This document shows positions 31,757-64,000 of a stretch of DNA of 64,000 bases, piece by piece (positions within the stretch are counted from its first letter, which is position 1; every line of letters begins with the position of its first letter). Origin of the DNA: Auanema rhodensis. Taxonomy: Eukaryota; Animalia; Nematoda. Below the pieces are notes generated by a model that saw only the letters and a list, made by a program, of their open reading frames with translations, made no database searches and had not been told where the DNA came from. Position numbers and translations under genes: made by a program. The stretch spans positions 9,300,001 to 9,364,000 of the forward strand of contig OZ059897.1 in NCBI GenBank assembly GCA_964057225.1. The letters run 5' to 3'.

Positions 31757-31767
31757 TGCCCTTTTTC
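31757..31767 (-). promoter_or_regulatory. Element 1 polypurine tract
   Basis: Sense GAAAAAGGG-CA immediately before the 3' LTR. Confidence 0.7.
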
Positions 31768-41113: not shown

Positions 41114-41479
41114 GTTGACGTTGAATGAGTGACAAGAAATTCAGGTCGGTTATAGGGAAAAGTAAGAAAAGTTTGAAGATTGAGACGTGGCGTCTTTCGC
41201 CGAGAGTCGTTATTAGATGAGAAAGAGTTTTAAAATCTTGGCCTGAGATCTGGCTCCGCCTATCTACCGTATTCTCTTTTCTTTATTCTTTTTCACAGAT
41301 GTTCATCAATTATAAATTTTGTTGGTCTTCGCTCTTTCCAGCCTCAATCTTAATACTTTACTCTAATTAAATTTTTGAAAGTATGAGAGAGATTTTCAGT
41401 CGTTTTATGTCCCCTTTTTATGCATAAGATTCTTTATATTTGTAGAGCTGAAGAAGGAAAAAAAAAAAAAAATCAAAGA

Positions 41480-42996: not shown

Positions 42997-43009
42997 GGTG
43001 GAACCTCCA
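42997..43009 (-). promoter_or_regulatory. Element 1 primer-binding site (tRNA-Gln)
   Basis: Sense TGGAGGTTCCACC immediately after the 5' LTR, complementary to the tRNA-Gln 3' end ...GGTGGAACCT-CCA (recalled sequence). Confidence 0.88.
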
Positions 43010-43375
43010 CGTTCCATTATGCTCCTACGTATATTGAACAGACCATTGTAGTCTGCTCAACTACGCGTATAGTATTCCATAAGTGTAGCGGTATGGAAAC
43101 AGAGCATAAGGATTACATAAGATAAGGAAATATATAGGTTTATTATACACAATACAATATCATTACAATACAATAACACAAGGATAAAGTAAACTACACT
43201 TACAAGACAAAGACTAATATATAAGATTAACTAAGTTAGATGCAAACCGTCCATGGGCTTGCAAAGGGGCGAACTCCCGAATAGGGGCATGAGGGAAGGC
43301 GGTGCCATTCCACATTCCTCTAGTCGGTCTGGCTCTAACCCTGCAGTTACATATATAGAGTCTCCGAATGGAACG
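43010..43375 (-). repeat. Element 1 5' LTR (366 bp)
   Basis: Direct repeat of 31391-31756, directly abutting the PBS. Confidence 0.97.
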
Positions 43376-45216
43376 ATAGAATTCTGTAGATGTAACATTG
43401 TTTCAGTTCTTAGAACTCTGTTTAAGTGTTTTCAAACTTTGTATAGATAACAAGAAAAATAAAATGATAGAGATAGAACACTTCTAAGATCTTGATCTAA
43501 AATTTTTCTGACGGACGGAGCCATTAGAACCAAAGATTACAAGAATTATTCTGATTTCACCTGCATAAAGATCCAGTAGAAAATTACGTTATGCTCTGAA
43601 CATCTAAATGATTCAATACAATATTAGAAATCACAGCCCGGTTAGCTCAGTCGGTAGAGCACCAGACTCTTAATCTGGCTGTCGCGGGTTCGAGCCCCGC
43701 ATCGGGCTTCAAGTTTTACCTTTTATTTGAAATTTGAAAGTTTATTTTGAAAATTCATTTCTAACCTCTTTCTGATCAGATAGAATTCTGTAGATGTAAC
43801 ATTGTTTCAGTTCTTAGAACTCTGTTTAAGTGTTTTCAAACTTTGTATAGATAACAAGAAAAATAAAATGATAGAGATAGAACACTTCTAAGATCTTGAT
43901 CTAAGGTTTTTCTGACGGACTGAGCCATTAGAACCAAAGATTACAAGAAGAAAATTACCTTTGCTCCGAGCATCTAAATGCTTCAATACAATATTAGAAA
44001 TCACAGCCCGGTTAGCTCAGTCGGTAGAGCACCAGACTCTTAATCTGGCTGTCGCGGGTTCGAGCCCCGCATCGGGCTTCAAGTTTTACCTTTTATTTGA
44101 AATTTGAAAGTTTATTTTGAAAATTCATTTCTAACCTCTTTCTGATCAGATAGAATTCTGTAGATGTAACATTGTTTCAGTTCTTAGAACTCTGTTTAAG
44201 TGTTTTCAAACTTTGTATAGATAACAAGAAAAATAAAATGATAGAGATAGAACACTTCTAAGATCTTGATCTAAGGTTTTTCTGACGGACTGAGCCATTA
44301 GAACCAAAGATTACAAGAATTATTCTGATTTCACCTGCATAAAGATCCAGTAGAAAATTACATTATGCTCTGAACATCTAAATGATTCAATACAATATTA
44401 GAAATCACAGCCCGGTTAGCTCAGTCGGTAGAGCACCAGACTCTTAATCTGGCTGTCGCGGGTTCGAGCCCCGCATCGGGCTTCAAGTTTTACCTTTTAT
44501 TTGAAATTATAACGTTTATTTTGAAAATTCATTTCTAACCTCTTTCTGATCAGATAGAATTCTGTAGATGTAACATTGTTTCAGTTCTTAGAACTCTGTT
44601 TAAGTGTTTTCAAACTTTGTATAGATAACAAGAAAAATAAAATGATAGAGATAGAACACTTCTAAGATCTTGATCTAAGGTTTTTCTGACGGACTGATCC
44701 ATTAGAACCAAAGATTACAAGAATTATTCTGATTTCACCTGCATAAAGATCCAGTAAAAAATTACCTTTGCTCCGAGCATCTAAATGCTTCAATACAATA
44801 TTAGAAATCACAGCCCGGTTAGCTCAGTCGGTAGAGCACCAGACTCTTAATCTGGCTGTCGCGGGTTCGAGCCCCGCATCGGGCTTCAAGTTTTACCTTT
44901 TATTTGAAATTTGAAAGTTTATTTTGAAAATTCATTTCTAACCTCTTTCTGATCAGATAGAATTCTGTAGATGTAACATTGTTTCAGTTCTTAGAACTCT
45001 GTTTAAGTGTTTTCAAACTTTGTATAGATAACAAGAAAAATAAAATGATAGAGATAGAACACTTCTAAGATCTTGATCTAAAATTTTTCTGACGGACGGA
45101 GCCATTAGAACCAAAGATTACAAGAATTATTCTGATTTCACCTGCATAAAGATCCAGTAGAAAATTACGTTATGCTCTGAACATCTAAATGATTCAATAC
45201 AATATTAGAAATCACA

Positions 45217-45288
45217 GCCCGGTTAGCTCAGTCGGTAGAGCACAGACTCTTAATCTGGCTGTCGCGGGTTCGAGCCCCGCATCGGGCT
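45217..45288 (+). pseudogene. tRNA-Lys copy with a 1-nt deletion in the anticodon stem
   Basis: gagcacagactc vs gagcaccagactc; the same lesion recurs in the copy at 50466. Confidence 0.55.
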
Positions 45289-46427
45289 TCAAGTTTTACC
45301 TCTTATTTGAAATTTGAAAGTTTATTTTGAAAATTCATTTCTAACCTCTTTCTGATCAGATAGAATTCTGTAGATGTAACATTGTTTCAGTTCTTAGAAC
45401 TCTGTTTAAGTGTTTTCAAACTTTGTATAGATAACAAGAAAAATAAAATGATAGAGATAGAACACTTCTAAGATCTTGATCTAAGGTTTTTCTGACGGAC
45501 TGAGCCATTAGAACCAAAGATTACAAGAATTATTCTGATTTCACCTGCATAAAGATCCAGTAGAAAATTACGTTATGCTCTGAACATCTAAATGATTCAA
45601 TACAATATTAGAAATCACAGCCCGGTTAGCTCAGTCGGTAGAGCACCAGACTCTTAATCTGGCTGTCGCGGGTTCGAGCCCCGCATCGGGCTTCAAGTTT
45701 TACCTTTTATTTGAAATTATAACGTTTATTTTGAAAATTCATTTCTAACCTCTTTCTGATCAGATAGAATTCTGTAGATGTAACATTGTTTCAGTTCTTA
45801 GAACTTTGTTTAAGTGTTTTCAAACTTTGTATAGATAACAAGAAAAATAAAATGATAGAGATAGAACACTTCTAAGATCTTGATCTAAGGTTTTTCTGAC
45901 GGACTGATCCATTAGAACCAAAGATTACAAGAATTATTCTGATTTCACCTGCATAAAGATCCAGTAGAAAATTACGTTATGCTCCGAGCATCTAAATGCT
46001 TCAATACAATATTAGAAATCACAGCCCGGTTAGCTCAGTCGGTAGAGCACCAGACTCTTAATCTGGCTGTCGCGGGTTCGAGCCCCGCATCGGGCTTCAA
46101 GTTTTACCTTTTATTTGAAATTTGAAAGTTTATTTTGAAAATTCATTTCTAACCTCTTTCTGATCAGATAGAATTCTGTAGATGTAACATTGTTTCAGTT
46201 CTTAGAACTCTGTTTAAGTGTTTTCAAACTTTGTATAGATAACAAGAAAAATAAAATGATAGAGATAGAACACTTCTAAGATCTTGATCTAAGGTTTTTC
46301 TGACGGACTGAGCCATTAGAACCAAAGATTACAAGAATTATTCTGATTTCACCTGCATAAATATCCAGTAGAAAATTACGTTATGCTCCGAGCATCTAAA
46401 TGATTCAATACAATATTAGAAATCACA

Positions 46428-46500
46428 GCCCGGTTAGCTCAGTCGGTAGAGCACCAGACTCTTAATCTGGCTGTCGCGGGTTAGAGCCCCGCATCGGGCT
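46428..46500 (+). pseudogene. tRNA-Lys copy with B-box mutation C56A
   Basis: GGTTAGAGCC (position 46483). Confidence 0.6.
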
Positions 46501-49500
46501 TTAAGTTTTACCTTTTATTTGAAATTATAACGTTTATTTTGAAAATTCATTTCTAACCTCTTTCTGATCAGATAGAATTCTGTAGATGTAACATTGTTTC
46601 AGTTCTTAGAACTCTGTTTAAGTGTTTTCAAACTTTGTATAGATAACAAGAAAAATAAAATGATAGAGATAGAACACTTCTAAGATCTTGATCTAAGGTT
46701 TTTCTGACGGACTGATCCATTAGAACCAAAGATTACAAGAATTATTCTGATTTCACCTGCATAAAGATCCAGTAGAAAATTACCTTTTGCTCTGAACATC
46801 TAAATGATTCAATACAATATTAGAAATCACAGCCCGGTTAGCTCAGTCGGTAGAGCACCAGACTCTTAATCTGGCTGTCGCGGGTTCGAGCCCCGCATCG
46901 GGCTTTAAGTTTTACCTTTTATTTGAAATTATAACGTTTATTTTGAAAATTCATTTCTAACCTCTTTCTGATCAGATAGAATTCTGTAGATGTAACATTG
47001 TTTCAGTTCTTAGAACTCTGTTTAAGTGTTTTCAAACTTTGTATAGATAACAAGAAAAATAAAATGATAGAGATAGAACACTTCTAAGATCTTGATCTAA
47101 GGTTTTTCTGACGGACTGAGCCATTAGAACCAAAGATTACAAGAATTATTCTGATTTCACCTGCATAAATATCCAGTAGAAAATTACGTTATGCTCCGAG
47201 CATCTAAATGATTCAATACAATATTAGAAATCACAGCCCGGTTAGCTCAGTCGGTAGAGCACCAGACTCTTAATCTGGCTGTCGCGGGTTCGAGCCCCGC
47301 ATCGGGCTTTAAGTTTTACCTTTTATTTGAAATTATAACGTTTATTTTGAAAATTCATTTCTAACCTCTTTCTGATCAGATAGAATTCTGTAGATGTAAC
47401 ATTGTTTCAGTTCTTAGAACTCTGTTTAAGTGTTTTCAAACTTTGTATAGATAACAAGAAAAATAAAATGATAGAGATAGAACACTTCTAAGATCTTGAT
47501 CTAAGGTTTTTCTGACGGACTGATCCATTAGAACCAAAGATTACAAGAATTATTCTGATTTCACCTGCATAAAGATCCAGTAGAAAATTACGTTATGCTC
47601 CGAGCATCTAAATGATTCAATACAATATTAGAAATCACAGCCCGGTTAGCTCAGTCGGTAGAGCACCAGACTCTTAATCTGGCTGTCGCGGGTTCGAGCC
47701 CCGCATCGGGCTTCAAGTTTTACCTTTTATTTGAAATTTGAAAGTTTATTTTGAAAATTCATTTCTATCCTCTTTCTGATCAGATAGAATTCTGTAGATG
47801 TAACATTGTTTCAGTTCTTAGAACTCTGTTTAAGTGTTTTCAAACTTTGTATAGATAACAAGAAAAATAAAATGATAGAGATAGAACACTTCTAAGATCT
47901 TGATCTAAGGTTTTTCTGACGGACTGAGCCATTAGAACCAAAGATTACAAGAATTATTCTGATTTCACCTGCATAAAGATCCAGTAGAAAATTACCTTTG
48001 CTCCGAGCATCTAAATGCTTCAATACAATATTAGAAATCACAGCCCGGTTAGCTCAGTCGGTAGAGCACCAGACTCTTAATCTGGCTGTCGCGGGTTCGA
48101 GCCCCGCATCGGGCTTGAAGTTTTACCTTTTATTTGAAATTTGAAAGTTTATTTTGAAAATTCATTTCTAACCTCTTTCTGATCAGATAGAATTCTGTAG
48201 ATGTAACATTGTTTCAGTTCTTAGAACTCTGTTTAAGTGTTTTCAAACTTTGTATAGATAACAAGAAAAATAAAATGATAGAGATAGAACACTTCTAAGA
48301 TCTTGATCTAAGGTTTTTCTGACGGACTGAGCCATTAGAACCAAAGATTACAAGAATTATTCTGATTTCACCTGCATAAAGATCCAGTAGAAAATTACCT
48401 TTGCTCCGAGCATCTAAATGCTTCAATACAATATTAGAAATCACAGCCCGGTTAGCTCAGTCGGTAGAGCACCAGACTCTTAATCTGGCTGTCGCGGGTT
48501 CGAGCCCCGCATCGGGCTTCAAGTTTTACCTTTTATTTGAAATTTGAAAGTTTATTTTGAAAATTCATTTCTAACCTCTTTCTGATCAGATAGAATTCTG
48601 TAGATGTAACATTGTTTCAGTTCTTAGAACTCTGTTTAAGTGTTTTCAAACTTTGTATAGATAACAAGAAAAATAAAATGATAGAGATAGAACACTTCTA
48701 AGATCTTGATCTAAAATTTTTCTGACGGACGGAGCCATTAGAACCAAAGATTACAAGAATTATTCTGATTTCACCTGCATAAAGATCCAGTAGAAAATTA
48801 CGTTATGCTCTGAACATCTAAATGATTCAATACAATATTAGAAATCACAGCCCGGTTAGCTCAGTCGGTAGAGCACCAGACTCTTAATCTGGCTGTCGCG
48901 GGTTCGAGCCCCGCATCGGGCTTCAAGTTTTACCTTTTATTTGAAATTTGAAAGTTTATTTTGAAAATTCATTTCTAACCTCTTTCTGATCAGATAGAAT
49001 TCTGTAGATGTAACATTGTTTCAGTTCTTAGAACTCTGTTTAAGTGTTTTCAAACTTTGTATAGATAACAAGAAAAATAAAATGATAGAGATAGAACACT
49101 TCTAAGATCTTGATCTAAGGTTTTTCTGACGGACTGAGCCATTAGAACCAAAGATTACAAGAATTATTCTGATTTCACCTGCATAAAGATCCAGTAGAAA
49201 ATTACGTTATGCTCTGAACATCTAAATGATTCAATACAATATTAGAAATCACAGCCCGGTTAGCTCAGTCGGTAGAGCACCAGACTCTTAATCTGGCTGT
49301 CGCGGGTTCGAGCCCCGCATCGGGCTTCAAGTTTTACCTTTTATTTGAAATTTGAAAGTTTATTTTGAAAATTCATTTCTAACCTCTTTCTGATCAGATA
49401 GAATTCTGTAGATGTAACATTGTTTCAGTTCTTAGAACTCTGTTTAAGTGTTTTCAAACTTTGTATAGATAACAAGAAAAATAAAATGATAGAGATAGAA

Positions 49501-50465
49501 CACTTCTAAGATCTTGATCTAAAATTTTTCTGACGGACGGAGCCATTAGAACCAAAGATTACAAGAATTATTCTGATTTCACCTGCATAAAGATCCAGTA
49601 GAAAATTACGTTATGCTCTGAACATCTAAATGATTCAATACAATATTAGAAATCACAGCCCGGTTAGCTCAGTCGGTAGAGCACCAGACTCTTAATCTGG
49701 CTGTCGCGGGTTCGAGCCCCGCATCGGGCTTCAAGTTTTACCTTTTATTTGAAATTTGAAAGTTTATTTTGAAAATTCATTTCTAACCTCTTTCTGATCA
49801 GATAGAATTCTGTAGATGTAACATTGTTTCAGTTCTTAGAACTCTGTTTAAGTGTTTTCAAACTTTGTATAGATAACAAGAAAAATAAAATGATAGAGAT
49901 AGAACACTTCTAAGATCTTGATCTAAGGTTTTTCTGACGGACTGAGCCATTAGAACCAAAGATTACAAGAATTATTCTGATTTCACCTGCATAAAGATCC
50001 AGTAGAAAATTACGTTATGCTCTGAACATCTAAATGATTCAATACAATATTAGAAATCACAGCCCGGTTAGCTCAGTCGGTAGAGCACCAGACTCTTAAT
50101 CTGGCTGTCGCGGGTTCGAGCCCCGCATCGGGCTTCAAGTTTTACCTTTTATTTGAAATTTGAAAGTTTATTTTGAAAATTCATTTCTAACCTCTTTCTG
50201 ATCAGATAGAATTCTGTAGATGTAACATTGTTTCAGTTCTTAGAACTCTGTTTAAGTGTTTTCAAACTTTGTATAGATAACAAGAAAAATAAAATGATAG
50301 AGATAGAACACTTCTAAGATCTTGATCTAAAATTTTTCTGACGGACGGAGCCATTAGAACCAAAGATTACAAGAATTATTCTGATTTCATCTGCATAAAG
50401 ATCCAGTAGAAAATTACGTTATGCTCTGAACATCTAAATGATTCAATACAATATTAGAAATCACA

Positions 50466-50537
50466 GCCCGGTTAGCTCAGTCGGTAGAGCACAGACTCTT
50501 AATCTGGCTGTCGCGGGTTCGAGCCCCGCATCGGGCT
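50466..50537 (+). pseudogene. tRNA-Lys copy with a 1-nt deletion in the anticodon stem
   Basis: gagcacagactc, as in the copy at 45217. Confidence 0.55.
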
Positions 50538-51203
50538 TCAAGTTTTACCTTTTATTTGAAATTTGAAAGTTTATTTTGAAAATTCATTTCTAACCTCTTT
50601 CTGATCAGATAGAATTCTGTAGATGTAACATTGTTTCAGTTCTTAGAACTCTGTTTAAGTGTTTTCAAACTTTGTATAGATAACAAGAAAAATAAAATGA
50701 TAGAGATAGAACACTTCTAAGATCTTGATCTAAAATTTTTCTGACGGACGGAGCCATTAGAACCAAAGATTACAAGAATTATTCTGATTTCACCTGCATA
50801 AAGATTCAGTAGAAAATTACATTATGCTCTGAACATCTAAATGATTCAATACAATATTAGAAATCACAGCCCGGTTAGCTCAGTCGGTAGAGCACCAGAC
50901 TCTTAATCTGGCTGTCGCGGGTTCGAGCCCCGCATCGGGCTTTAAGTTTTACCTTTTATTTGAAATTATAACGTTTATTTTGAAAATTCATTTCTAACCT
51001 CTTTCTGATCAGATAGAATTCTGTGGATGTAACATTGCTTCTGCCCTTTGAACTTTGTTTAAGTGTTTTCAAACTTTGTATAGATAACAAGAAAAATAAA
51101 ATGATAGAGATAGAACACTTCTAAGATCTTGATCTAAGGTTTTTCTGACGGACTGATCCATTAGAACCAAAGATTACAAGAATTATTCTGATTTCACCTG
51201 CAT

Positions 51204-51540
51204 CGTTCCGTTATGCTCTCACATCGATCCTATAGACCAATAAAGCCTACAAGATGAGTGTGATAGTATTCCAGATGTAGCGGTAGATAAAGAGCATAAT
51301 GGATAAACATAAGACTCGAGAAAGAAAGGTTTATTATGTCTACATGATTACAATACGTTATATAAGTCTACATAAAGATATAAAGTGAAAGAGAGCTAAG
51401 AAAGGAAGACCAACCATCCATAGTCATTCCATAAGGCAAAGCTGAAGTCTGTGTTCCATATGAAGGGCGTGTCGTCCTCTCTCAGCCTCATGTCGTCTGA
51501 TTCTAACCCGCCTGCTACGCATTGATTTCCGAATGGAACG
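51204..51540 (-). repeat. Element 2 3' LTR (337 bp)
   Basis: Termini CGTTCC...GGAACG; sense-strand AATAAA at 51330-51335; no differences from the 5' LTR seen by eye. Confidence 0.97.
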
Positions 51541-51552
51541 TGCCATTTTTTC
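51541..51552 (-). promoter_or_regulatory. Element 2 polypurine tract (imperfect)
   Basis: Sense GAAAAAATGG-CA before the 3' LTR. Confidence 0.6.
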
Positions 51553-52236
51553 GAGTTTATGTCGCGTCCTCGCGAATAGCAAAATATGTGGCTTGTTCCA
51601 ATCGTAGCAGAAGGTTTAGTTTTAAAAAATAAAAATTACAATGTTAACATAAAAATAGTAAAGATAAATTACAATATAATGTTAAACAATATTATCTGAA
51701 AAGAATTTAATAAAAATTATTTGAAAATACATGAATATTAAGGAATAAAACAATCTTTTAGAATACCAGGGCTATATTTTGTCAGCGAGAGTGCGCAAAA
51801 TAGCTTTTTAGGCACGACGCTGCATGTCTAACTTGTTTGAGTATAGAGAAACGAGAGTCATGCTATATTATCGATGGAGCTAGCATGTTTCCTCAGCGTA
51901 TTCAAAGCGAATTGTAATAATAAAAAAAATTAAATTAAATCCCATATAATTTCCGGAATTGAATCATTAACTACTTGATAAGGACTGTTGCTCAGATGAA
52001 TATGCAATATAATGTCTCTTATCTTTCATTTCTTCTTTATTTACGGGAAATTATTTGAAATTGATGAAGTTTTATAATCATATATGCTTTGAAACTGAAA
52101 TGCTTTTTGATTATTAGCTTACATCTCGTCTTACTCAAGTTTTTCAATGATATAATAATATGAATAGCTCTGGTTTTTTAAAAGAGAGTTGATACAAGGT
52201 TTTACAATAATTTTATCAATCTCGAAGTTATTTCTT

Positions 52237-55200
52237 TCATCGTCTTCTTCTTGGTGGTAGCCAATTTTGGTCCGATGGGTCTTCTGGTTCTGTTTCTTCA
52301 GTAGAGTCATAGTTATCGTTACCATTTATGACTTTTATGATCTCAATATCGCTGTCGTCGTCCGTGTCATAAGTCGTTGTATTTGATCGCGTGTTTTGAG
52401 CGATTGTATGCTCCATTTTGCGTTCAAAAAGTTTGAGATTGTCTTTGTGTACGTCTTGAATTTTTCCAAATGGATTCTTGAGTTGTACCATGTTTCCTTC
52501 AACGTTGATGACTTCAAATGGTCCATCATATGATTTGCGAAGCTTTTGACCTGGTTTATGCGCTTTAATTGCTAACATAACTTGGTCTCCTTTTCGGATA
52601 TCTCTTTCTTCTATTCGTTGTCGTCCATCATGTTTTCTCTTCGCGGTTTCTTGATGTTTTGCAAGATTTTCTTGAATGATGGTTCTTCTTTCTCCTCTGA
52701 TATATTCGGTATTCTCAATTTCTTCCAAGATCTCTGGTTGTAATGTCTCGGGGAATAATTCTTTGTCTAATCTCATACGACTTTCTTTTCCGAATAATGC
52801 TATGTATGGAGAGATTCCTGTGGTTGCGTGTGTTATTGTATTTAACGCAAAAGTAATTTTTGGTAAATACATGTCCCAATCAGTTACGTCTTCGTTGAGA
52901 TAGTGTGTTAATCCTTCTTCTAGCGTTCTGTGTAGTCTTTCGACTTGTCCATTAGAGTTTTTCTGATGAGGGAGTGTTGGCTCGTGTTTAATGCCAAGTT
53001 TTTCACACATTTCTTCAAATTTCTTTGATACAAAATTAGATCCACGATCGGTTATTAAACGATTTGGTGGTCCAAAAATATATACGAAATTCCTGAGGAA
53101 TCTATCAATGATGACATCGGTGACAATTGTTGGTATAGCGATGGTTGTCGCCCATTTGGAGAATGAATCTTGTATTGTTAGGACATAATTGTTGTTTCTT
53201 TTTGAAGTAGGGAATGGTCCCATAATATCCATATGTATTCTCTCAAATGGTTTTGATGGTATTTCAAATTGACCCATAGGCTGAACGGTCATAGCGTGAG
53301 GATCTTTCTTCCTTTGTGCGCATTTAACGCATTGTTTCACAAAAATTGCTATGTCCGTTTGCATATTTGTCCAGCAAAATCTTCGTAGTATGGCTTCTTT
53401 AGTTTTGTTAATTCCTTGATGTGCTCCAATTGCTGGGTCTTCGTGAAATTCTTCGATAACCTTGTTGATAAGTTCGCTTTCCCTTGGTAAAATCAAAGCT
53501 GGGTGTGGTCGTTTTCTGCTTGGTTTTGTGTATAACATGTTGTCAATAACACAATAACGATCATTAGAAAGCATGTTCTTTTTCGCTCTGTATTCTATTT
53601 CGGCGATAGTTCTCTTTATCCAAGGTGTATCCTCTTGAATTGCTCTAATGTCAGGTACATTAACGAAATTAATTTGAGCTTTCGGAATTTCTTTTGTTTT
53701 CTTTTTCTTTTCCGGTTTAGGATCGTTTGCTTCATCTCCAATGTATCGTGAGAGAGCATCACAGACTTTGTTTAGTCTGCCTTCTCGGTATCTTATCTCG
53801 ATATCGTATTCCTGTATGACTAATTGAAATTTTGCTAGTCTTCCAAAAAGGTCTCTACGAGTCAATAAGCTTGTTAATGGTCGATGGTCTGTGATACAGA
53901 TTGTATGTGATCCAAGTATATATGTTCGAAACTGAGCTAAAGCGTATACGAGTCCTAACGCTTCTATTTCAATAGGAGCATAGTTGCGTTCCGCTTTTAC
54001 AAGTTTACGGCTTGCAAATGCAATTGGATGTAAATTTTTGAGTGGTTCATTGGGATCTTCAGGTTGTAATAACACTGCTCCCACTGCGATATTACTACCG
54101 TCACTTTCTATAATGAACATACGGTCTGATCTTGGTGGTTTTAAGACCGGTGCTTGGATCAATTTTCTTTTTAGTGTATCAACAGCTTGTTGACTTTTGT
54201 CATTCCATTGAAATTCCACATCAAGTTTTGTAAGGTCGTATAAAGGGCTTGCGATGTGTGCAAAATCCTTAATAAATTTCCGAAAGAATCCTACCATTCC
54301 CAAAAATGCTCTTACTCCTGTAGGTGACTTTGGAGCAGGATAGTCTTGAATGGCGGAGACTTTCTGTGGATCTGGTTTGACCCCATCTCTTCCGACAATT
54401 AAACCAAGAAATTTTACTTCAGGTCTTGCAAAAACGCATTTCTTGAGTTTTATTTTCATGCCTAATTTCTTTACTTCTCTGAGAATCTCAGCTATATCGT
54501 CAAGATGTTGTTCTGCAGTGTCTGATATAACGAGTAGATCATCCAAATAAACAAAGAGTCGGCATTTACATCGGCTTTGAAGGTATCGTACTGCTGTTTG
54601 AAAGGTATGTGGCGCTCCACATAACCCCATAGGCATCCTTCTATATTGATAAGTACCGGTGTTTGTTGTAAATGCTGTTAATGGTCGATCTGATTCCTTT
54701 AATGCTATTTGGAAGAATCCGGATACTAAATCAAAGTTAGAAAAATATTGTGATCCGGCTGCCATATCGACAATGTCAGAGATGTTAGGTATGATGTACG
54801 TTTGCTTGCGAGTGACGTTATTTAGAGCACGGAAATCGGTTACGAAACGGAATGTTTCATCTTTCTTTTTGACTAAAACTACAGGACTATTGAAAAGAGA
54901 TGTGGATGGTTCAATTATATTTTGCTTCAGCATCTCCTGTACCTGTCTTTCGACTTCTTCTTGTTTGCCTATAGGGATACGCGTTATACGCGGTCTAGGC
55001 ATGTCCATATCTGTTCTTAGAGGTATTGAATGCTCTACAGGTCCTTTAAATAGTCCTATTTGTTTATCCTCATTTAAAAATGCATCTCTATTACGGAGAA
55101 TACAAAGCTGAAGAAGATCTTTTTGTTCTTTAGTTAGGTCGGCGTCTTTTAAATCAAGATCGTTCATAAAGTCCTGAGGAAAATGAGGTAATTTATTTTC

Positions 55201-58200
55201 CCAATCTGCTTCTGGTGGTATATAGTCTGGATTGTGTTCGGTCGTAAAGATCTCGTATTGTGGCAGTACGCCTATTTTTGCTTTGTCAATAATGTTTCCG
55301 GGTGATAGATCTATAGGATGATCAGTGTTGTTTTTGAATGGCATGGTAATTGAATTGACGTCTCGAAATGCTGTTTCGTAGGTGGTAGATATCGTCTTTT
55401 CTTCATCGGGTTGTAGCACGGCGACTTCGTTGTGTGATATGGGTTCAGCTAACCTTACTGGTATTCTACAGGTCTGATGAGGAAAGATACATTGTGGATT
55501 TAAATTTATCAAATTAATGGCAAATGATGTTTTTCTGATATTCCCGTTATTTCCATTGGCTAACGGTACTACGCGGTTTCCGATTTCTAACGTTTGTTTG
55601 AATGGTCGAAGTTTCATACCGATATTTTGACGATCGAGTGTTTTCATAAAATCTAATCCACTTAATGCTGGTGATGGACAGTCTTCATCTCTTGAAATGA
55701 AGAATGTATGATCTATTTCATATCCAGCGATTTCTACGGTTAAATCAATTGTTCCCAGAAATCGAAATTCTGATCCGTTTGCTGTCGTTGCAACTGATTT
55801 ATCCTTTTTTACAAAATCATTCAAAGTTAAGTAATGTAATGTCGAGAGTCTGATATAACTAATCGATGATCCTGAATCCCAAAGAGTTAGGATTAGTCTA
55901 TCGTTAACAGTCATCAATAACAATGGTAGAGTTTGGTCTTTGCGATTGGAAACTGAACAAACTATGGGCATAGCTAGTGGAACTAAAGTGAGAAACGATG
56001 GATAGTACTGTTTCATTATGTTCCTTGGTATTGGCTGATCAGGTTGACTTACTAGCTCTAATGTTTCTTCGTATGTGGGAAGATCGTTGGTTTGATCTCG
56101 GAGTTCGATATGCATAACTTGCATGCCTATTGGTTTGAAAAAATATATTTTCGCAACGAAGGCTAGTACGATCAGTATAACTACAATAATTGTAATTGCT
56201 CCAATAGTGATGAGTGTTCGTTCAATCGTTCCTGCTATTGTATCGACAAATGAATTCCATGTACTTTTGGTGAATTCATTGGCTTTGGAGATGTAATCAC
56301 TACTTTTCTTCAATATGCTGAATGCTGATGATATTTTTGGATCATGATGAATTGTGTGAAGCACGTGATTTTGACGAATCGATGCTAAACTAGCACCATA
56401 AGCAATGGCTGTTGTCATTGAGTACACTCGAGATGATAAGTTGGTGTATAAGTGTGCTCCTGTGAATTTTAATGGCGTGATCTTTTCATGATGAAGTCCG
56501 TCCCACATGGATATAAGACTGACGTCTACAGTACCATTAATTCCTTTCCATTCACCGTCTGTTGACCATACGTCTGTTGGTACGTGATCACAGTTAATTT
56601 CTTTACCATGAGGTAATAGGTCTTTCGATCCTGGTGCGGCAAACAGTAATTGTCCTTCTTGTGTTAATACTGGGGTTTCGAGATAACATGTGCCATTCAC
56701 AGTGTGATTGTGATATATAGTCTTTTGTAATACTACCGGGCAAACATGTATATGTAATATCTCGCTGCCTACAAATCTTGCGGCTATATCTTCTCTTCCC
56801 AGTATTGTACGCATAGCTATTGTTGGTTCGATTTGTAAAATTGATCTCCATAATTCAAGATACCTATTTTGGATCTCACATATTGATTCGTATGACTCTT
56901 TAAAATGTTTCTGCAGTTCTTCTTGAATCATAGTTGTAGCATATTGCAAATGATCTTGTGCAATTCTGCTTGTTATGTTTTGGCGAAACTGTTGTTCAGA
57001 GTCAACTTTTGTGGCAATGTATTGAGCATTAGCCTGTACAGACTCTATATCGGTGGCTGTAGGCGTTGATGATGCTCTATGTTTACGAATCAAAGATATT
57101 GGTGTATATGTTGTTTCTTCCATTATTGGAATTTGTTGATCTTGATGAACAGCGTAGAGAATAGTAGTTGGCGGCGTGCGGGTCGATATTGTTGCGCGCG
57201 CGGTTGTCGTTGCGGTTGTATGGCGCGCCGTTGTTTCGGGCTGGGCCATCAATGAAGGCGCGCGCGCGGTAGTTGCTGCGGCTGCCCGAGGGCTTGTAGA
57301 TGTTTGCGGCAGTATTGCGGGATCTGTTGTGATCAGCGCCTCACGATCGATTATAGGGAGGGCTGCCATCTCGGCCGCGCCGCCTGCCGCGTTGCTTGGC
57401 GCACGCGTCGTGGTTTGCAACGATTTAAGATGGATTTTCTCTGTCATTAATCTTTTTAACTGTTCTGATGATATTCTACTAGATGTATTAGGCAAAATAT
57501 TATCGTTTAGTAGTGGTAAAAATATTTCCAATAATAAGTCCTTAGAGATGTTGTTGGGCTCTATGAGCTTGGGATGTGGTCCAATTGGTATTCCAAAATT
57601 ATTCTTGATGTCATAGAACAATTTATCAGTATCAAGTACAAACATTCGTGAAGATGGAAGGTTTATAAATTTTATGTCATCAATATCAGCTGCTGTTTTA
57701 TTTCTTCTAAGCGTAACGAGAGTTTTTAGCTCATGTACAAGGTCAATTGTATCTTTTATAAATTTGCTGTTTCTTTCTTCTTGATCAGTTAATAATTGTT
57801 TCCTTATTGGTGGCATTTTTACGAATGCTTTTAATATTTCTTGTCTTGATGGAACTGTTAATTTGTCTTCAATTATAACTGGTGTATTGGCTAAATCAAG
57901 AGCAATAGTTTCAGCACGCTCTCGATAAGTGCCTTCTTTTGTACGAATTAACCGATCAAATTCAATAACGGTCAAACGATCTGATATTTGTTGAAGAAGT
58001 TGCCTGGATGTTAAATAAGATATTCCAGCTTTTGTAGCTAAAGCTAATTCTCTTTGAGCAACATATTGTAAAATGGCTTCGTCTTTATCACGGAAATCAT
58101 ATTGCTTGAGAAAATGTCTTAAAGATTTCTCATAAATTTGAATTTTAAAGAAAAATTCAAAATTTTCACGATGGGCTATTATCCATTCTTTCAAGGAATA

Positions 58201-60975
58201 TGTAGGGTCTACCATACGTCTTCCTTTAATTAGAGGAATAATTTGTGTAATTCCTGGATTACTCATAAGTGGTCTTAAAAATGGATATGGACAAATTCGA
58301 AGCGTGTACGTTTCAAAATCTTCAACTTCATTTATTCTATCCTGATCGAATGGGAATGAGCATTTTGTAGAAGTTGCGCGTTTAGGTCTTTTGAACGGCA
58401 ATTTCTTAAATTCTCGTTCAATTAGGAGTGTGATATTGTTATCATTAGGATATTTGGGGAATGTTATATAATTTCCTGATGTTGTATGGAATGCTGGTTG
58501 TCTAAAGCAGGATGCAATTGGTTTTGGTGTTATTTTACTCGAAAGGATAAGCGCTGATTGTGTACTTGGAATCAAAATAGTTTCTTTGCTTATTATAGCA
58601 TCGTAGTAATGCATATCGATATAATTACAACGGGAATCCGATGTTTGGGGATCCCATATAATTATTGATGTATTTGATTTGCAATTACCATGATGAGCAC
58701 TACAACCTTCAGTGTTTAGTATTAAATTGGATAATATTGTATCATCGGGCATGCGGGTCATGACTCCGCGCTCTAGTACTAAACGCGGCCGCTCCTCGCA
58801 CTCGTCGCGGCTAAACGCGCGCGCCGGATCATAGGAGGGCTTTGGGGTTGCTTGTGCTATACTATCGATTCTCTCCAGCTCCATGTTATTCCATTTGCGA
58901 TCGCGAATCGCCTGCCTGCACTCGTGCGCCGCTATAGGCTGCACCCTATCGATTGTTCTGTTTGTGTCGCGGAGGAATAACAAATCGCGTACACACAGCT
59001 TGTGTACTTCCTTCGAGCAGCGCCACGCGTCCCACTCGTGAGCCGTGTGGTTTCGCGTGTATAAATGGATTTGTGTACGTAGCACATGATTTGTTTCTGT
59101 TAATTTACATTTCTTTACTACTGGTGGAACTAATAAGGCTCCTCCAGTTGCTTTTGTGCAAATTTGATATGAAGTTACACATGGCAGGAAAATTGCTACT
59201 GTGATTGCCATTACAACCGTTAGTGATAACGGTGAAAGGGTCACAGAGTTAATTCGTGGTGTGCTTCTATCTCGTCCTCTTGATTGATCTCTTTGATTGT
59301 TAAAATGGACTCTTCTTTGTCCGTTATGTTCATTAGTCCTTCCTCTTCTACTATTGTTTGAAGGATTAAAATTGTTTGAATGCCAGTTGTTATTAAATCG
59401 TCCCGAATTTCGTTCATAATTATTGTTACGGCGATAATTAGCAAAAGAGCCGTTACGATTTTGGTTGTTATTATATTTTGAAAAGTTTTTATTTTTCTGA
59501 TAATTTTGATAATTATGATAATTTTTATTGTTTTGGTTATCACGTGGATAATTACGGTCGAAATTTCGGTTATCTCGTCTCTCGTTTGTGCGCGCGAAAG
59601 GAGCTAGTGCTTTGTTTACAGCATTGACTAGCATGGACTGCGTGTCTGTTGTCTGGTTCATTATCGATTCTTCCCAGCGAGCGGCCTCAATCGCATCCGT
59701 GAAGGATTTTGGCTTCGCTCGAATCACAGCTGGTTTCAGAGTATTTTTCAGTCCTCTGAGGAAAGTTGATCTTAATATGTGATCTTTGTGAGGGTCATCC
59801 GTGGCAAAAGCGCTTAGTGCAATCGTTCTCAGTGATTGAGCGTAAGCGTCAATTGTCAGATCCCCTTGGGTTGTATTTTGGAGATTGATTAGCGCGGGGT
59901 CCTGATTATATTCAGGACACAGCTTAGATGTTAAAGCTCTTAACAGGTCATTCCATGAACCGGTGGTTTTTAATTGTTCAGGTACTTGCCTGTACGCTTC
60001 TTCCGCTGCTTCGTTTTTAAGAAGCAAAGGTAGAAGGGCTAATCTCTCCGGGATTACCAGACCTACAGCGTTGGCAAATAGGTTGAATTTAGCCGTGAAA
60101 TCTCGAAAGTTGCGACTGCCATCATAAGTTGGGCAGTAGGGTGATAACAAGGCTTGCGCTATGGTAGTTTTCCCTGCCCCAGGTAAAGAAGGTTCAGTTG
60201 CCATATTATTTGTACGGGCAGATGGCATTTTTATCACTCTGCCTGTTGTTAATGAGTTCTCAGACACAGGGGTTGTGTGTACTGAGCGGCTGGGTTGGTT
60301 TGGTGCTTTTGAACTTCCTGTTGTTGTATTTGGTAAAATTGGGGTTGAAGTTTGGTTATCAGTAATAGCAAGATGTGTATGTTCGGGTGGTTGTATGGGA
60401 GATAAATTAATGTTTGGAACCGACGAGTATCTATTCGTGTGGCTGGTGTTCAAGTTTCGATCTTTTGGTGAACGATTGAAGAGATCAGAAACTATGTTTT
60501 TAAAAGTTTGTAAACCGCCTGCACTAGTAGTGGCTACTGAAGGTGAAACTGTTGGTTCAGGGATGGACAGAGAGAGAGATGCGTCCGATTTGCTTGAGTT
60601 TTTATTTTTATTTTTCTTATTTTTATTTGAATTAGAGGAGCGTACCTTTTTAGCAGTAACTGGTGTTTGTTCTTCCACTATGATGGATGTTTCTTCTCCT
60701 CCTGGTGGTACGTAATCCTCGTCGCTTAATCGTTCAGTAGGTGAATAAGTGCCTGCACGAGGAGTAAAGAACTTGTCGGTTTTGTGCTCGGCTTTCTGCT
60801 CGTCTTCGATTATAGCGATGCTTTGTGCGCGAGCTCGGCTTCTGGTGAGTGGAGCTGAGTCTCGCAGATCAAAATCAGTTCGTGTACTGAGAGGTACAGC
60901 TGATCGGAATCGCTTATCCACTTTGGTAGCGCTCTTGGTTTGGAAAAACCTTGAGTGTTTAGTAACGTGGGGGAT
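52237..60975 (-). CDS. Element 2 single-frame Gag-Env(gB-like)-PR-RT-RH-IN polyprotein (~2912 aa from the inferred AUC start)
   Basis: Capsid domain; N/R-rich NC-like region; signal peptide ~59170-59241; RPKR 58378-58389; CEIQNRYLELW; TM ~56140-56215; LWDSGS 55870-55878; YLDD 54538-54549; RNase H; IN with HHCC, the D-D-E triad (HMDIMGP, ITDRG, VERL) and GPF. ORF track starts at GTG 60921; first ATG is 60228. Confidence 0.95.
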   Translation of the reverse strand: MPHVTKHSRFFQTKSATKVDKRFRSAVPLSTRTDFDLRDSAPLTRSRARAQSIAIIEDEQKAEHKTDKFFTPRAGTYSPTERLSDEDYVPPGGEETSIIVEEQTPVTAKKVRSSNSNKNKKNKNKNSSKSDASLSLSIPEPTVSPSVATTSAGGLQTFKNIVSDLFNRSPKDRNLNTSHTNRYSSVPNINLSPIQPPEHTHLAITDNQTSTPILPNTTTGSSKAPNQPSRSVHTTPVSENSLTTGRVIKMPSARTNNMATEPSLPGAGKTTIAQALLSPYCPTYDGSRNFRDFTAKFNLFANAVGLVIPERLALLPLLLKNEAAEEAYRQVPEQLKTTGSWNDLLRALTSKLCPEYNQDPALINLQNTTQGDLTIDAYAQSLRTIALSAFATDDPHKDHILRSTFLRGLKNTLKPAVIRAKPKSFTDAIEAARWEESIMNQTTDTQSMLVNAVNKALAPFARTNERRDNRNFDRNYPRDNQNNKNYHNYQNYQKNKNFSKYNNNQNRNGSFANYRRNNNYERNSGRFNNNWHSNNFNPSNNSRRGRTNEHNGQRRVHFNNQRDQSRGRDRSTPRINSVTLSPLSLTVVMAITVAIFLPCVTSYQICTKATGGALLVPPVVKKCKLTETNHVLRTQIHLYTRNHTAHEWDAWRCSKEVHKLCVRDLLFLRDTNRTIDRVQPIAAHECRQAIRDRKWNNMELERIDSIAQATPKPSYDPARAFSRDECEERPRLVLERGVMTRMPDDTILSNLILNTEGCSAHHGNCKSNTSIIIWDPQTSDSRCNYIDMHYYDAIISKETILIPSTQSALILSSKITPKPIASCFRQPAFHTTSGNYITFPKYPNDNNITLLIEREFKKLPFKRPKRATSTKCSFPFDQDRINEVEDFETYTLRICPYPFLRPLMSNPGITQIIPLIKGRRMVDPTYSLKEWIIAHRENFEFFFKIQIYEKSLRHFLKQYDFRDKDEAILQYVAQRELALATKAGISYLTSRQLLQQISDRLTVIEFDRLIRTKEGTYRERAETIALDLANTPVIIEDKLTVPSRQEILKAFVKMPPIRKQLLTDQEERNSKFIKDTIDLVHELKTLVTLRRNKTAADIDDIKFINLPSSRMFVLDTDKLFYDIKNNFGIPIGPHPKLIEPNNISKDLLLEIFLPLLNDNILPNTSSRISSEQLKRLMTEKIHLKSLQTTTRAPSNAAGGAAEMAALPIIDREALITTDPAILPQTSTSPRAAAATTARAPSLMAQPETTARHTTATTTARATISTRTPPTTILYAVHQDQQIPIMEETTYTPISLIRKHRASSTPTATDIESVQANAQYIATKVDSEQQFRQNITSRIAQDHLQYATTMIQEELQKHFKESYESICEIQNRYLELWRSILQIEPTIAMRTILGREDIAARFVGSEILHIHVCPVVLQKTIYHNHTVNGTCYLETPVLTQEGQLLFAAPGSKDLLPHGKEINCDHVPTDVWSTDGEWKGINGTVDVSLISMWDGLHHEKITPLKFTGAHLYTNLSSRVYSMTTAIAYGASLASIRQNHVLHTIHHDPKISSAFSILKKSSDYISKANEFTKSTWNSFVDTIAGTIERTLITIGAITIIVVILIVLAFVAKIYFFKPIGMQVMHIELRDQTNDLPTYEETLELVSQPDQPIPRNIMKQYYPSFLTLVPLAMPIVCSVSNRKDQTLPLLLMTVNDRLILTLWDSGSSISYIRLSTLHYLTLNDFVKKDKSVATTANGSEFRFLGTIDLTVEIAGYEIDHTFFISRDEDCPSPALSGLDFMKTLDRQNIGMKLRPFKQTLEIGNRVVPLANGNNGNIRKTSFAINLINLNPQCIFPHQTCRIPVRLAEPISHNEVAVLQPDEEKTISTTYETAFRDVNSITMPFKNNTDHPIDLSPGNIIDKAKIGVLPQYEIFTTEHNPDYIPPEADWENKLPHFPQDFMNDLDLKDADLTKEQKDLLQLCILRNRDAFLNEDKQIGLFKGPVEHSIPLRTDMDMPRPRITRIPIGKQEEVERQVQEMLKQNIIEPSTSLFNSPVVLVKKKDETFRFVTDFRALNNVTRKQTYIIPNISDIVDMAAGSQYFSNFDLVSGFFQIALKESDRPLTAFTTNTGTYQYRRMPMGLCGAPHTFQTAVRYLQSRCKCRLFVYLDDLLVISDTAEQHLDDIAEILREVKKLGMKIKLKKCVFARPEVKFLGLIVGRDGVKPDPQKVSAIQDYPAPKSPTGVRAFLGMVGFFRKFIKDFAHIASPLYDLTKLDVEFQWNDKSQQAVDTLKRKLIQAPVLKPPRSDRMFIIESDGSNIAVGAVLLQPEDPNEPLKNLHPIAFASRKLVKAERNYAPIEIEALGLVYALAQFRTYILGSHTICITDHRPLTSLLTRRDLFGRLAKFQLVIQEYDIEIRYREGRLNKVCDALSRYIGDEANDPKPEKKKKTKEIPKAQINFVNVPDIRAIQEDTPWIKRTIAEIEYRAKKNMLSNDRYCVIDNMLYTKPSRKRPHPALILPRESELINKVIEEFHEDPAIGAHQGINKTKEAILRRFCWTNMQTDIAIFVKQCVKCAQRKKDPHAMTVQPMGQFEIPSKPFERIHMDIMGPFPTSKRNNNYVLTIQDSFSKWATTIAIPTIVTDVIIDRFLRNFVYIFGPPNRLITDRGSNFVSKKFEEMCEKLGIKHEPTLPHQKNSNGQVERLHRTLEEGLTHYLNEDVTDWDMYLPKITFALNTITHATTGISPYIALFGKESRMRLDKELFPETLQPEILEEIENTEYIRGERRTIIQENLAKHQETAKRKHDGRQRIEERDIRKGDQVMLAIKAHKPGQKLRKSYDGPFEVINVEGNMVQLKNPFGKIQDVHKDNLKLFERKMEHTIAQNTRSNTTTYDTDDDSDIEIIKVINGNDNYDSTEETEPEDPSDQNWLPPRRRR

Positions 60976-62317
60976 TTTGAGACGTTAATGAGTGTTATGG
61001 ATAAGGAGTTTTGGAAAAGGGGTGAGAAAGCTGTGAGTAACTGGTTTGTATAGTCGGCGTTAAGGAATGAATCTAAGTTGTGGCCTTTAACAGAGATCCG
61101 CCTACTACCGTATGAAAATTTGGACTTTGTTCGCTTTCCAATTTAATATTCTTAAATGTATATAATTCAACCAGTTTGTATATGTTCAAAAAATGTTCAG
61201 TGCTTACTTGATTGATGCCTGAGCAATCTCATTAGTCCTTATTCCCATTTTTTTTCTTTTTCTGACGATTCTGATCTTCTTGGACTCACGAGTGATCGAA
61301 AATGCCACGAAAATGGACTTTGGTAAATGTTCAAAGGATTTTAGCGGTTTTCATAATGTACATTCGTAATAGCATTACTCTTTTAAGGAAGCAATTTGGA
61401 AAACGAATGAGTACCGTAGTCCCATCATGATCAGAAATCTAGTTTTAAAATTATGGCTAGGAATAGATGACTAAAGATTACAATAACTATATTTAAAGAA
61501 TTATGGTGTTTAGGAATGAGTCTTATGCTTCAAAACAACAATAACGGTATGAGGAAGGTGACATATAGTAAGGGGAGAAAATCCAAACTGATATGCTTAA
61601 GCCAACACGACCTGATAGACAATCACTAATAATAATTCAGTTCGTAAAATTGTACAGGATTTTTCGGACTATAGCGATCTTAAAATTCACTTTTCATAAT
61701 ATTCCTCCCATTTAGGTGAGGTTTCCCGTGTAAATTCAATGCGTTATCAAAATATTTTCGGATGTTAATGGCAAAAAGTTGTCTGAACAGAAATGTAACG
61801 CAAAATAAAATAGTCCTGATCGCAAAATATGAAATAATCTCAATTTGGTGCGCAAAATTGTTTCATCCACAAAAATAAAGAAATAACCGTGGCTATTCTT
61901 TCCTCGAAGCCAAAATCAATCCTTAAAAGGGGAAAGTGTGGGCATAAATCTCAATAAAAATTATCCTTGGGTGAATTTGTTCACTAATTCATCCTAGGGT
62001 CCTCAAAAATGCTTCGAGTTCGGGTAACAGAGTATTTGATGTTAACAGCAAGGATATAAAAATTGTTGGGTTCAGACAGACAGAAAATTGTGAACAAACG
62101 GGAAAATATAACTTCAGTTTCAAAAAATATAAAATCCATCTCCAAAAGGAGTGGTCCTTGCATCTGTTCCCTTTTAAACGTTGTTGGCCCCACCGTATTG
62201 TGTTAAGACATGGAGTAGATGGTGTAGAGATATAAGAGAATTCAGATTCAATGAAATGTAGTAAAAATAACGAAATATAAGAGAAAATAGTCAAGAAATC
62301 AAGATAAAAATGTTCGA

Positions 62318-62330
62318 GGTGGAACCTCCA
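62318..62330 (-). promoter_or_regulatory. Element 2 primer-binding site (tRNA-Gln)
   Basis: Sense TGGAGGTTCCACC abutting the 5' LTR, identical to element 1. Confidence 0.88.
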
Positions 62331-62667
62331 CGTTCCGTTATGCTCTCACATCGATCCTATAGACCAATAAAGCCTACAAGATGAGTGTGATAGTATTCCA
62401 GATGTAGCGGTAGATAAAGAGCATAATGGATAAACATAAGACTCGAGAAAGAAAGGTTTATTATGTCTACATGATTACAATACGTTATATAAGTCTACAT
62501 AAAGATATAAAGTGAAAGAGAGCTAAGAAAGGAAGACCAACCATCCATAGTCATTCCATAAGGCAAAGCTGAAGTCTGTGTTCCATATGAAGGGCGTGTC
62601 GTCCTCTCTCAGCCTCATGTCGTCTGATTCTAACCCGCCTGCTACGCATTGATTTCCGAATGGAACG
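62331..62667 (-). repeat. Element 2 5' LTR (337 bp)
   Basis: Direct repeat of 51204-51540. Confidence 0.97.
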
Positions 62668-62739
62668 GCATAAAGATCCAGTAGAAAATTACCTTTGCTC
62701 CGAGCATCTAAATGCTTCAATACAATATTAGAAATCACA

Positions 62740-64000
62740 GCCCGGTTAGCTCAGTCGGTAGAGCACCAGACTCTTAATCTGGCTGTCGCGGGTTCGAGCC
62801 CCGCATCGGGCTTCAAGTTTTACCTTTTATTTGAAATTTGAAAGTTTATTTTGAAAATTCATTTCTAACCTCTTTCTGATCAGATAGAATTCTGTAGATG
62901 TAACATTGTTTCAGTTCTTAGAACTCTGTTTAAGTGTTTTCAAACTTTGTATAGATAACAAGAAAAATAAAATGATAGAGATAGAACACTTCTAAGATCT
63001 TGATCTAAGGTTTTTCTGACGGACTGAGCCATTAGAACCAAAGATTACAAGAATTATTCTGATTTCACCTGCATAAAGATCCAGTAGAAAATTACATTAT
63101 GCTCTGAACATCTAAATGATTCAATACAATATTAGAAATCACAGCCCGGTTAGCTCAGTCGGTAGAGCACCACACTCTTAATCTGGCTGTCGCGGGTTCG
63201 AGCCCCGCATCGGGCTTTAAGTTTTACCTTTTATTTGAAATTATAACGTTTATTTTGAAAATTCATTTCTAACCTCTTTCTGATCAGATAGAATTCTGTG
63301 GATGTAACTATGCTTCTGCCCTTTGAACTTTGTTTAAGTGTTTTCAAACTTTGTTTAGATAACAAGAAAAATAAAATGATAGAGATAGAACACTTCTAAG
63401 ATCTCGATCCAAAATATTCCCGACGGACTGAGCCATTAGAACCAAAGATTACAAGAATTATTCTGATTTCACCTGCATAAATATCCAGTAGAAAATTACG
63501 TTATGCTCCGAGCATCTAAATGATTCAATACAATATTAGAAATCACAGCCCGGTTAGCTCAGTCGGTAGAGCACCAGACTCTTAATCTGGCTGTCGCGGG
63601 TTCGAGCCCCGCATCGGGCTTTAAGTTTTACCTTTTATTTGAAATTATAACGTTTATTTTGAAAATTCATTTCTAACCTCTTTCTGATCAGATAGAATTC
63701 TGTGGATGTAACATTGCTTCTGCCCTTTGAACTTTGTTTAAGTGTTTTCAAACTCTGTTTAGATAACAAGAAAAATGAAATGATAGAGATAGAACACTTC
63801 TAAGATCTCGATCCAAAATATTCCCGACGGACTGCGTCATTAGAACCAAAGATTACAAGAATTATTCTGATTTCACCTGCATAAAGATCCAGTACAAAAT
63901 TACGTTATGCTCTGAACATCTAAATGATTCAATACAATATTAGAAATCACAGCCCGGTTAGCTCAGTCGGTAGAGCACCAGACTCTTAATCTGGCTGTCG
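62740..64000 (+). tRNA. tRNA-Lys(CUU) x3 plus 1 copy truncated by the window end (array segment 3)
   Basis: Starts: 62740, 63144, 63548, 63952 (partial). Confidence 0.97.

Follow-up and report, generated by a model that had tools for sequence, protein, structure and literature searches.

The 64,000-nucleotide stretch of the nematode Auanema rhodensis analysed here (assembly GCA_964057225.1, contig OZ059897.1, positions 9,300,001 to 9,364,000 of the forward strand; hereafter the window, from whose first letter all coordinates are counted) harbours two long terminal repeat (LTR) retroelements, termed A and B, which both lie on the reverse strand and carry an envelope glycoprotein (Env) between the Gag and Pol parts of one long gene. 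An earlier note on this DNA had claimed such an architecture, i.e. an Env glycoprotein placed in frame between Gag and the protease, reverse transcriptase, RNase H and integrase (PR-RT-RH-IN) of an LTR retroelement, and the open reading frames (ORFs) as well as the order of the Pfam matches bear this out. The bounds given there for A hold for the reading frame; with their LTRs the complete elements are larger (Table 1). We consider it very probable that A and B are recently inserted Ty3/gypsy-type (Metaviridae-like) elements of the nematode GAG-ENV-POL group.

Both elements possess two LTRs in direct orientation and a short target duplication within the 4–6 bp used as a Ty3/gypsy criterion; in A, the duplicated ATGC occupies positions 51200–51203 and 62668–62671. 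A purine-rich tract precedes the 3′ LTR in A and in B. The two LTRs show 0 mismatches over 337 bp in A and 2 in 366 in B, and because of this identity or near-identity it is clear that A and B were inserted recently and that both copies are young. The proteins encoded by A and B are 55% identical over ~2,700 residues and the elements therefore represent two families rather than two copies of one.

The Gag-Env-Pol frame of A contains an ORF of 2894 aa at 52237–60921 (reverse strand) and is stop-free from 60975 onwards, corresponding to 2,912 codons; 201 and 224 stop codons were counted in the two other sense frames. Based on the base composition, the chance of so long an open frame is ~1e-83 for A and ~1e-75 for B, with 200–224 stops in each of the other sense frames. 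The 2599-aa ORF of B encodes its parts in the same order as A, the integrase portion being affected by one frameshift and by no in-frame stops. Consequently, A alone is fully intact, and the single stop-free frame previously ascribed to both elements exists in A and is broken within the integrase of B. The capsid of A was recognised by Retrotrans_gag at residues 299–427 with 25.3 bits (cutoff 24.1) and by Ty3_capsid with 18 bits, under its cutoff, while the C-terminal 88 residues (59257–59520) of the adjoining N/R-rich region gave no Pfam match. According to the Pfam positions, the Pol order is PR-RT-RH-IN in both elements, Integrase_H2C2 and rve together spanning residues 2482–2652 of A, and the DSG and YLDD motifs, the H2C2 zinc finger, the DDE core and the GPF motif are all readable in the A sequence. 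In the short tail that links the Env anchor to PR, A has LPTY and B has PPGY, both reminiscent of the PPxY motifs for late budding or WW binding.

Table 1. Features of elements A and B and of their surroundings in the window (aa, amino acids; PBS, primer-binding site; AF2, AlphaFold2).
Feature	Position	Strand	Remarks
Element A, complete LTR retroelement	51204..62667	-	11,464 bp; LTR pair, exact ends, duplicated target
Element A, 5′ LTR	62331..62667	-	337 bp; starts CGTTCC, finishes GGAACG
Element A, 3′ LTR	51204..51540	-	Pairs with the 5′ LTR
Putative PBS	62312..62330 (A), 42991-43009 (B)	-	TGGAGGTTCCACCTCGAAC; abuts the 5′ LTR; identical in A and B
Long leader without conserved ORF	60976..62311 (A)	-	A/B comparison
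Single Gag-Env-Pol frame of A, including the stop codon	52237..60975	-	ORF listing, Pfam, stop counts
N-terminal extension, open, without ATG	60205..60975 (A)	-	Conserved between A and B only
Gag capsid region, Ty3/Retrotrans_gag type	59587..60204	-	Pfam; ATG just before it kept in A and B
N/R-rich basic region, nucleocapsid-like, without zinc knuckle	59257..59586	-	Between capsid and Env
Internal hydrophobic signal sequence (predicted)	59170..59253	-	ORF residues ~557-584
Env ectodomain	56212..59169	-	ORF residues 585-1570; ~990 aa; Pfam PF24664, AF2, Foldseek
Helical insert in Env	57418..58251	-	Downstream of R-x-K-R; lineage-specific
Disordered Ser/Thr/Ala/Pro-rich (mucin-like) stretch	57049..57417	-	pLDDT ~30-37
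Env transmembrane anchor (predicted)	56143..56211	-	ORF residues 1571-1593; hydropathy 3.18
Short tail, Env anchor to PR	55942..56142	-	LPTY in A, PPGY in B
Retropepsin (PR)	55642..55914	-	DSG motif; Pfam aspartyl protease, residues 1670-1760
Reverse transcriptase (RT)	54397..54873	-	YLDD motif; Pfam RVT_1, residues 2017-2175
RNase H (RH)	53806..54207	-	Pfam, residues 2239-2372
Integrase (IN)	52240..53478	-	H2C2 zinc finger, DDE core, GPF motif, acidic C-terminal tail; Pfam and motifs
Element B, second LTR retroelement, diverged family	31391..43375	-	11,985 bp
Element B, LTRs	31391-31756 and 43010-43375	-	366 bp; 4-bp target duplication CTAT
Gag-Env-Pol gene of B	32455..41113	-	Part order as in A; 55% identical to A
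Tandem tRNA-Lys(CTT) gene array	20346..64000	+	404-bp unit; insertion target of A and B

The Env of A is matched by the Pfam family Monjiviricetes_fusion (PF24664) at residues 1325–1584 with 48 bits (cutoff 27) and by Glycoprotein_B at residues 1322–1405 with 34 bits, under the cutoff of 43. Sequence searches of Env against the PDB yielded marginal matches to herpesvirus glycoprotein B (gB), the best with an E value of 1.4e-3, so that a search on the level of the fold was needed. For this, an AF2 model was calculated for the piece 56002–59256 (reverse strand) using an alignment of 53 sequences, i.e. A, B and 51 database relatives. In the model, a well-predicted β-rich domain at the N-terminus is followed first by helices and a disordered stretch, then by the long central helix, and finally by a β domain and a transmembrane helix. 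Foldseek matched it to gB of herpesviruses in the PDB (E 5.5e-11, probability 1.0) and, within a library of viral models, to rhabdo-like, nya- and chu-like glycoproteins (E down to 2.3e-15, probability 1.0), behind which gB ranks; the accompanying TM-scores are low (0.15–0.41) because of an insert in Env and the arrangement of the domains. Nine cysteine positions are invariant or nearly so across the 53-sequence alignment. On the basis of the fold matches to gB and Monjiviricetes glycoproteins and of the conserved cysteines, the modelled Env is assigned to the class III fusogens of the mononegaviral/gB kind. The ectodomain had also been described as Cys-rich, which is overstated, as it contains 15 cysteines in ~1050 residues, a density much like that of Pol.

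An R-x-K-R site follows the N-terminal domains of Env in A and B; at a corresponding place, furin cleaves the gB of several herpesviruses. Downstream of it, the helical and mucin-like segments form an insert of ~400–450 aa which is common to A, B and the Auanema protein P0001 only. The helical part has no Pfam match, and its separate AF2 model (pLDDT 61) found no Foldseek match (best E 0.67). The helical and mucin-like module may have been newly acquired by the Auanema-like branch as a domain for receptor binding or shielding.

A complete HMMER search started from the Env piece returned 301 cluster representatives at E<=1e-3. When A's own domains were mapped onto the best 151 of them, 65 were found to have Gag ahead of Env and/or PR/RT behind it in one predicted protein, including 16 with both. 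Together with the occurrence in two families that are 55% identical, this agrees with the earlier view that the layout is not a one-off insertion. An Env located behind IN was detected in only 2 of the 151, one of them being P0063. The database proteins P0063 and P0150, from ENA and Logan contigs, represent Bel/Pao elements with the order Gag-Pol-Env, Peptidase_A17 and DUF1759 domains, a single ORF of 2,681–3,293 aa and an Env of the A/B family at the 3′ end; this fusogen family thus spans two retroelement superfamilies and two positions. Named Env relatives stem from Acrobeloides nanus, Caenorhabditis remanei, C. nigoni and C. brenneri. The closest relatives of Pol (43–50% identity) are all nematode polyproteins which also bear gag and env domains and originate from Caenorhabditis auriculariae, C. 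remanei, C. nigoni, C. brenneri, Diploscapter pachys and Auanema; arthropod Ty3/gypsy Pol proteins follow at ~30%, one named for transposon 412, a placement which is by best matches only. All close relatives bearing names belong to rhabditid or cephalobid nematodes. A and B themselves are absent from the protein database, where the best match, again from Auanema, is 48–50% identical.

As eukaryotic gene models can hide introns, the DNA of the relatives was checked. A continuous ORF is present in C. nigoni (P0017), in the metagenome contig P0108 and in C. auriculariae (P0152); the gene model of C. remanei is spliced. A continuous gag-env-pro-pol ORF is also said to be described in the abstract of a previous paper by Sacco and colleagues.

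A Kyte-Doolittle scan of A indicated only two strong hydrophobic segments (residues 565–583 and 1571–1589), which flank the ectodomain and correspond to the type I topology of an Env with a signal at the ectodomain N-terminus and a C-terminal anchor; a further, weak hydrophobic stretch occurs ahead of PR. The signal and anchor that had been postulated around Env are also widespread in the 37 relatives with Env-Pol fusions: a hydrophobic segment lies directly upstream of Env in 29, directly downstream in 31 and on both sides in 24. These conserved segments fit the model put forward earlier, in which the polyprotein would be threaded through the membrane of the endoplasmic reticulum (ER), and the sequence as a whole is consistent with it. 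In this mechanistic scenario, the genomic RNA would be translated into one Gag-Env-Pol chain, whose Gag part would be made in the cytosol and stay on the cytosolic face of the membrane. The hydrophobic segment behind the N/R-rich region would act as an internal signal directing the nascent chain to the ER, and signal peptidase would cleave ahead of the conserved Y-Q-(I/L)-C. The ectodomain would then enter the ER lumen, become glycosylated and possibly be cut at the R-x-K-R site, until the transmembrane segment halts the transfer and leaves the short tail and PR-RT-RH-IN back in the cytosol. There, PR-RT-RH-IN would stay attached to the tail of Env and finally be released by the protease of the element itself.

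The explanation as a whole, comprising the identity of the elements and the threading of a single polyprotein, is the one we favour and regard as moderately probable, while threading as the main mode of expression is given slightly less than an even chance on the present sequence evidence. A literature search found no paper that tests ER threading, 1:1:1 synthesis or tethering of Pol to the Env tail. A more far-reaching proposal would be that Pol is delivered to the particles as an extension of the Env tail on the ER-threaded chain and not as a Gag-Pol fusion, that the Env insert is an acquired binding or shielding domain and that the N-terminal extension is started by GUG. Taken jointly, these three ideas appear doubtful, and no paper showing an Env-tail delivery of Pol was found for any retroelement.

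Several points weigh against the threaded polyprotein. The translation into one chain is a prediction from the DNA, and equimolar (1:1:1) synthesis of Gag, Env and Pol would be unlike the Gag excess of most retroelements. The topology of A was obtained by a hydropathy scan, a crude stand-in for dedicated signal and transmembrane predictors, and 6 of the 37 relatives are without a strong transmembrane segment after Env at the threshold used. The confidence of the AF2 model of Env is moderate (mean pLDDT 69, pTM 0.38). At the beginning of the frame, the first ATG comes only after 231 (A) or 333 (B) codons from a GTG taken as the start, and no counterpart of the N-terminal extension was found among 184 relatives or at 6 loci. 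Finally, in Diploscapter pachys (L006) gag forms a separate ORF which overlaps env-pol in the −1 frame, so that not every member of the family has the single frame. A slippery heptamer was sought in this overlap and none was found, and a programmed frameshift is therefore not distinguishable from decay.

The most serious alternative, which we rate as rather unlikely, accepts that the frame is continuous in the DNA and assumes that the proteins are produced from different RNAs, the polyprotein rarely or never existing as one chain. A splice that skips env would provide a Gag-Pol message, and a subgenomic or spliced-leader (SL) trans-spliced RNA would provide Env or Env-Pol. Retroviruses and insect errantiviruses indeed make Env from spliced RNA, and the leaders are unusually long, extending over 1.35 kb in A, 1.9 kb in B (41114–43009) and 2.2 kb in a C. 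nigoni relative (L002:776–3000). Moreover, the ATG missing at the frame start hints at RNA processing or unusual initiation, and the separation of gag from env-pol in the Diploscapter relative points in the same direction. However, env shares its frame with gag on one side and pol on the other, both in A and B and in the continuous ORFs from C. nigoni, C. auriculariae and the metagenome contig, and since introns need not stay open and in frame, an env that is merely an intron is disfavoured. The frame start likewise argues against different RNAs, as no conserved AG or UUUUCAG-type acceptor was seen there; a conserved “FFQ” at this position had been considered as a UUUUCAG splice acceptor and was dropped, the underlying DNA being TTTTTCCAA with the conserved AG absent. 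In a comparison of the leaders of A and B, no conserved upstream ORF or start exon was found, their similarity being confined to the PBS, one 29-nt block and the frame start, where a nucleotide block around CCAAAGTGG is conserved between A and B above its surroundings. Translation of the N-terminal extension may begin at a conserved GUG whose initiation context is good.

According to a second alternative, Gag is produced in excess by a start or stop mechanism that is invisible in the sequence, and the ratio deviates from 1:1:1 despite the single frame. One conceivable route would be initiation at the ATG before the capsid combined with frequent ribosome drop-off or degradation of the downstream parts. 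This ATG directly precedes the capsid in both A and B, the predicted proteins of most relatives begin 3–150 residues ahead of the capsid, and single-ORF Ty3/gypsy elements such as Tf1 adjust their Gag:Pol ratio after translation. Nevertheless, we judge the idea to be improbable; it is purely inferential, and neither a 2A-like NPGP motif at the junctions nor, in the overlap of the Diploscapter ORFs, a slippery heptamer was detected. That the elements are dead or accidental chimeras or an assembly artefact devoid of function, as the frameshift in the integrase of B and the location within a repetitive, hard-to-assemble array could suggest, is scarcely credible in view of junctions that are all common to two families of only 55% identity, of an intact A with identical LTRs and clean 4-bp duplications, of dozens of relatives with the same order in several nematode genera, and of the conserved cysteine and signal/anchor pattern.

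Both elements are integrated into the tandem array, whose 404-bp satellite-like repeat corresponds to at least 50 tRNA-Lys(CTT) genes (ARAGORN; Rfam tRNA, 69 bits). They are oriented antisense to the array tRNAs and sit at different positions of the repeat unit, since A was inserted 68 nt upstream of one tRNA and B 71 nt downstream of another. The idea that the family targets Pol III genes in the manner of Ty3 is not supported: among six loci of relatives (L001–L006, 3 of them with 10-kb flanks), tRNA genes were found at one, at a distance of 5–9 kb. The putative PBS of A and B is unlike the complement of a standard tRNA 3′ end. Priming by the tRNA-Lys of the surrounding array was rejected, as there is no complementarity, and so was a Tf1-like self-priming, no PBS complement of at least 10 nt being present in the LTR. 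The C. nigoni relative (L002) contains a similar putative PBS, TGGAGGTACCACCT, just 3′ of its 5′ LTR, and its LTR termini are TG..TA. Those of A and B, CGTTCC..GGAACG (5′-CG..CG-3′), deviate from TG..CA, which is typical of Ty3/gypsy elements but not strictly defining. Positions 1–20300 of the window are very AT-rich (GC 28–34%) and contain one ORF of at least 120 aa.

As a fully open and very young copy, A offers a clean specimen of a group whose expression and mode of transmission are called unknown in the literature. The conservation of signal and anchor around Env is the first thing wanted before membrane threading is taken seriously and, if true, the polyprotein model would amount to a solution other than that of the retroviruses for the packaging of Pol and the stoichiometry of Gag and Pol. 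For the classification of LTR elements, small leads come from the tRNA array as insertion site, from CG..CG termini in elements other than Troyka and from an Env insert that is restricted to one lineage. No new category is opened, the arrangement itself being published.

Among known systems, the structural polyproteins of flaviviruses and alphaviruses offer a functional analogy, as they combine a cytosolic capsid, an internal signal, one or more lumenal glycoproteins and stop-transfer anchors. Their processing is divided among host signal peptidase, furin and a viral protease. They show no homology to A and B, for which the corresponding steps are proposed by analogy only.

The 5′-CG..CG-3′ LTR termini, which have been called distinctive of Troyka LTR retrotransposons (PMC12440569), are shared by A and B. 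Troyka elements differ by 3-bp duplications compared with 4 bp in A/B and by the terminal pentamers CGCCA/TGGCG compared with CGTTC/GAACG (PMC12440569); in addition, they are devoid of a GPF/Y motif and of env, while A has GPF and env, and they are not reported from nematodes. Membership of A and B in Troyka was rejected on the basis of duplication length, terminal pentamers, GPF motif and env.

The insect errantiviruses gypsy, ZAM and Idefix are likewise Ty3/gypsy elements with env (PMC13524379). In contrast to A and B, their env is a separate ORF located 3′ of pol and expressed from spliced RNA, and it is of the F type in the classical Drosophila members. Single-ORF polyproteins that comprise an Env are also known from the nematode Belpaoviridae, in which Atlas virus encodes a single Gag-Pol-Env polyprotein of 2828 residues (PMC9094657). 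As predicted for A, Env is contained in one intron-less, stop-free polyprotein, and an Atlas-type chain must therefore cross the membrane. Unlike in A and B, the Env of these elements is placed 3′ of Pol, their Pol is of the Bel/Pao type with Peptidase_A17 and DUF1759, and the Env of Atlas virus is a class II protein of the phlebovirus Gn-Gc type. An assignment of A and B to Belpaoviridae was rejected, since Pfam detected neither Peptidase_A17 nor DUF1759 in either element.

With the glycoproteins of Monjiviricetes (PF24664; rhabdo-like, nyavirus and chu-like) and with gB (PF00606), the Env of A and B has in common the class III fold, an N-terminal signal and a C-terminal anchor, and its R-x-K-R site is found between the N-terminal β domains and the central helix. 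It differs by an identity of ~10–15%, by its embedding in a polyprotein with an internal signal, and by the large insert without a fold match.

The closest counterparts are found among the errantivirus-like Ty3/gypsy elements of Nematoda, Bryozoa and Platyhelminthes, which carry only ENV of the herpes simplex virus (HSV)/gB type in the order GAG-ENV-POL (Chary & Hayashi, eLife 2026, preprint 2023, PMC13524379). In the same study, these elements do not form one clade, their mechanism of transmission is called unknown, and the first report of the ENV/POL flip in nematodes is credited to Sacco et al. 2022 (J Gen Virol 103:1739), whose elements go by the name of “non-canonical nematode endogenous retroviruses”. 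To judge from its title, the latter paper deals with the capture of an RNA-virus glycoprotein by a metavirus, which agrees with the fold search on Env. The earlier suggestion of a candidate undescribed lineage thus fails, because the layout was described in both publications. A and B resemble the nematode GAG-ENV-POL elements in being LTR elements with a Ty3/gypsy Pol and a gB-type class III Env between Gag and Pol, and their nearest relatives are all from nematodes; they deviate by the helical and mucin-like insert of Env, the CG..CG termini and the N-terminal extension without ATG. A and B are new members of this known group, whose layout they share.

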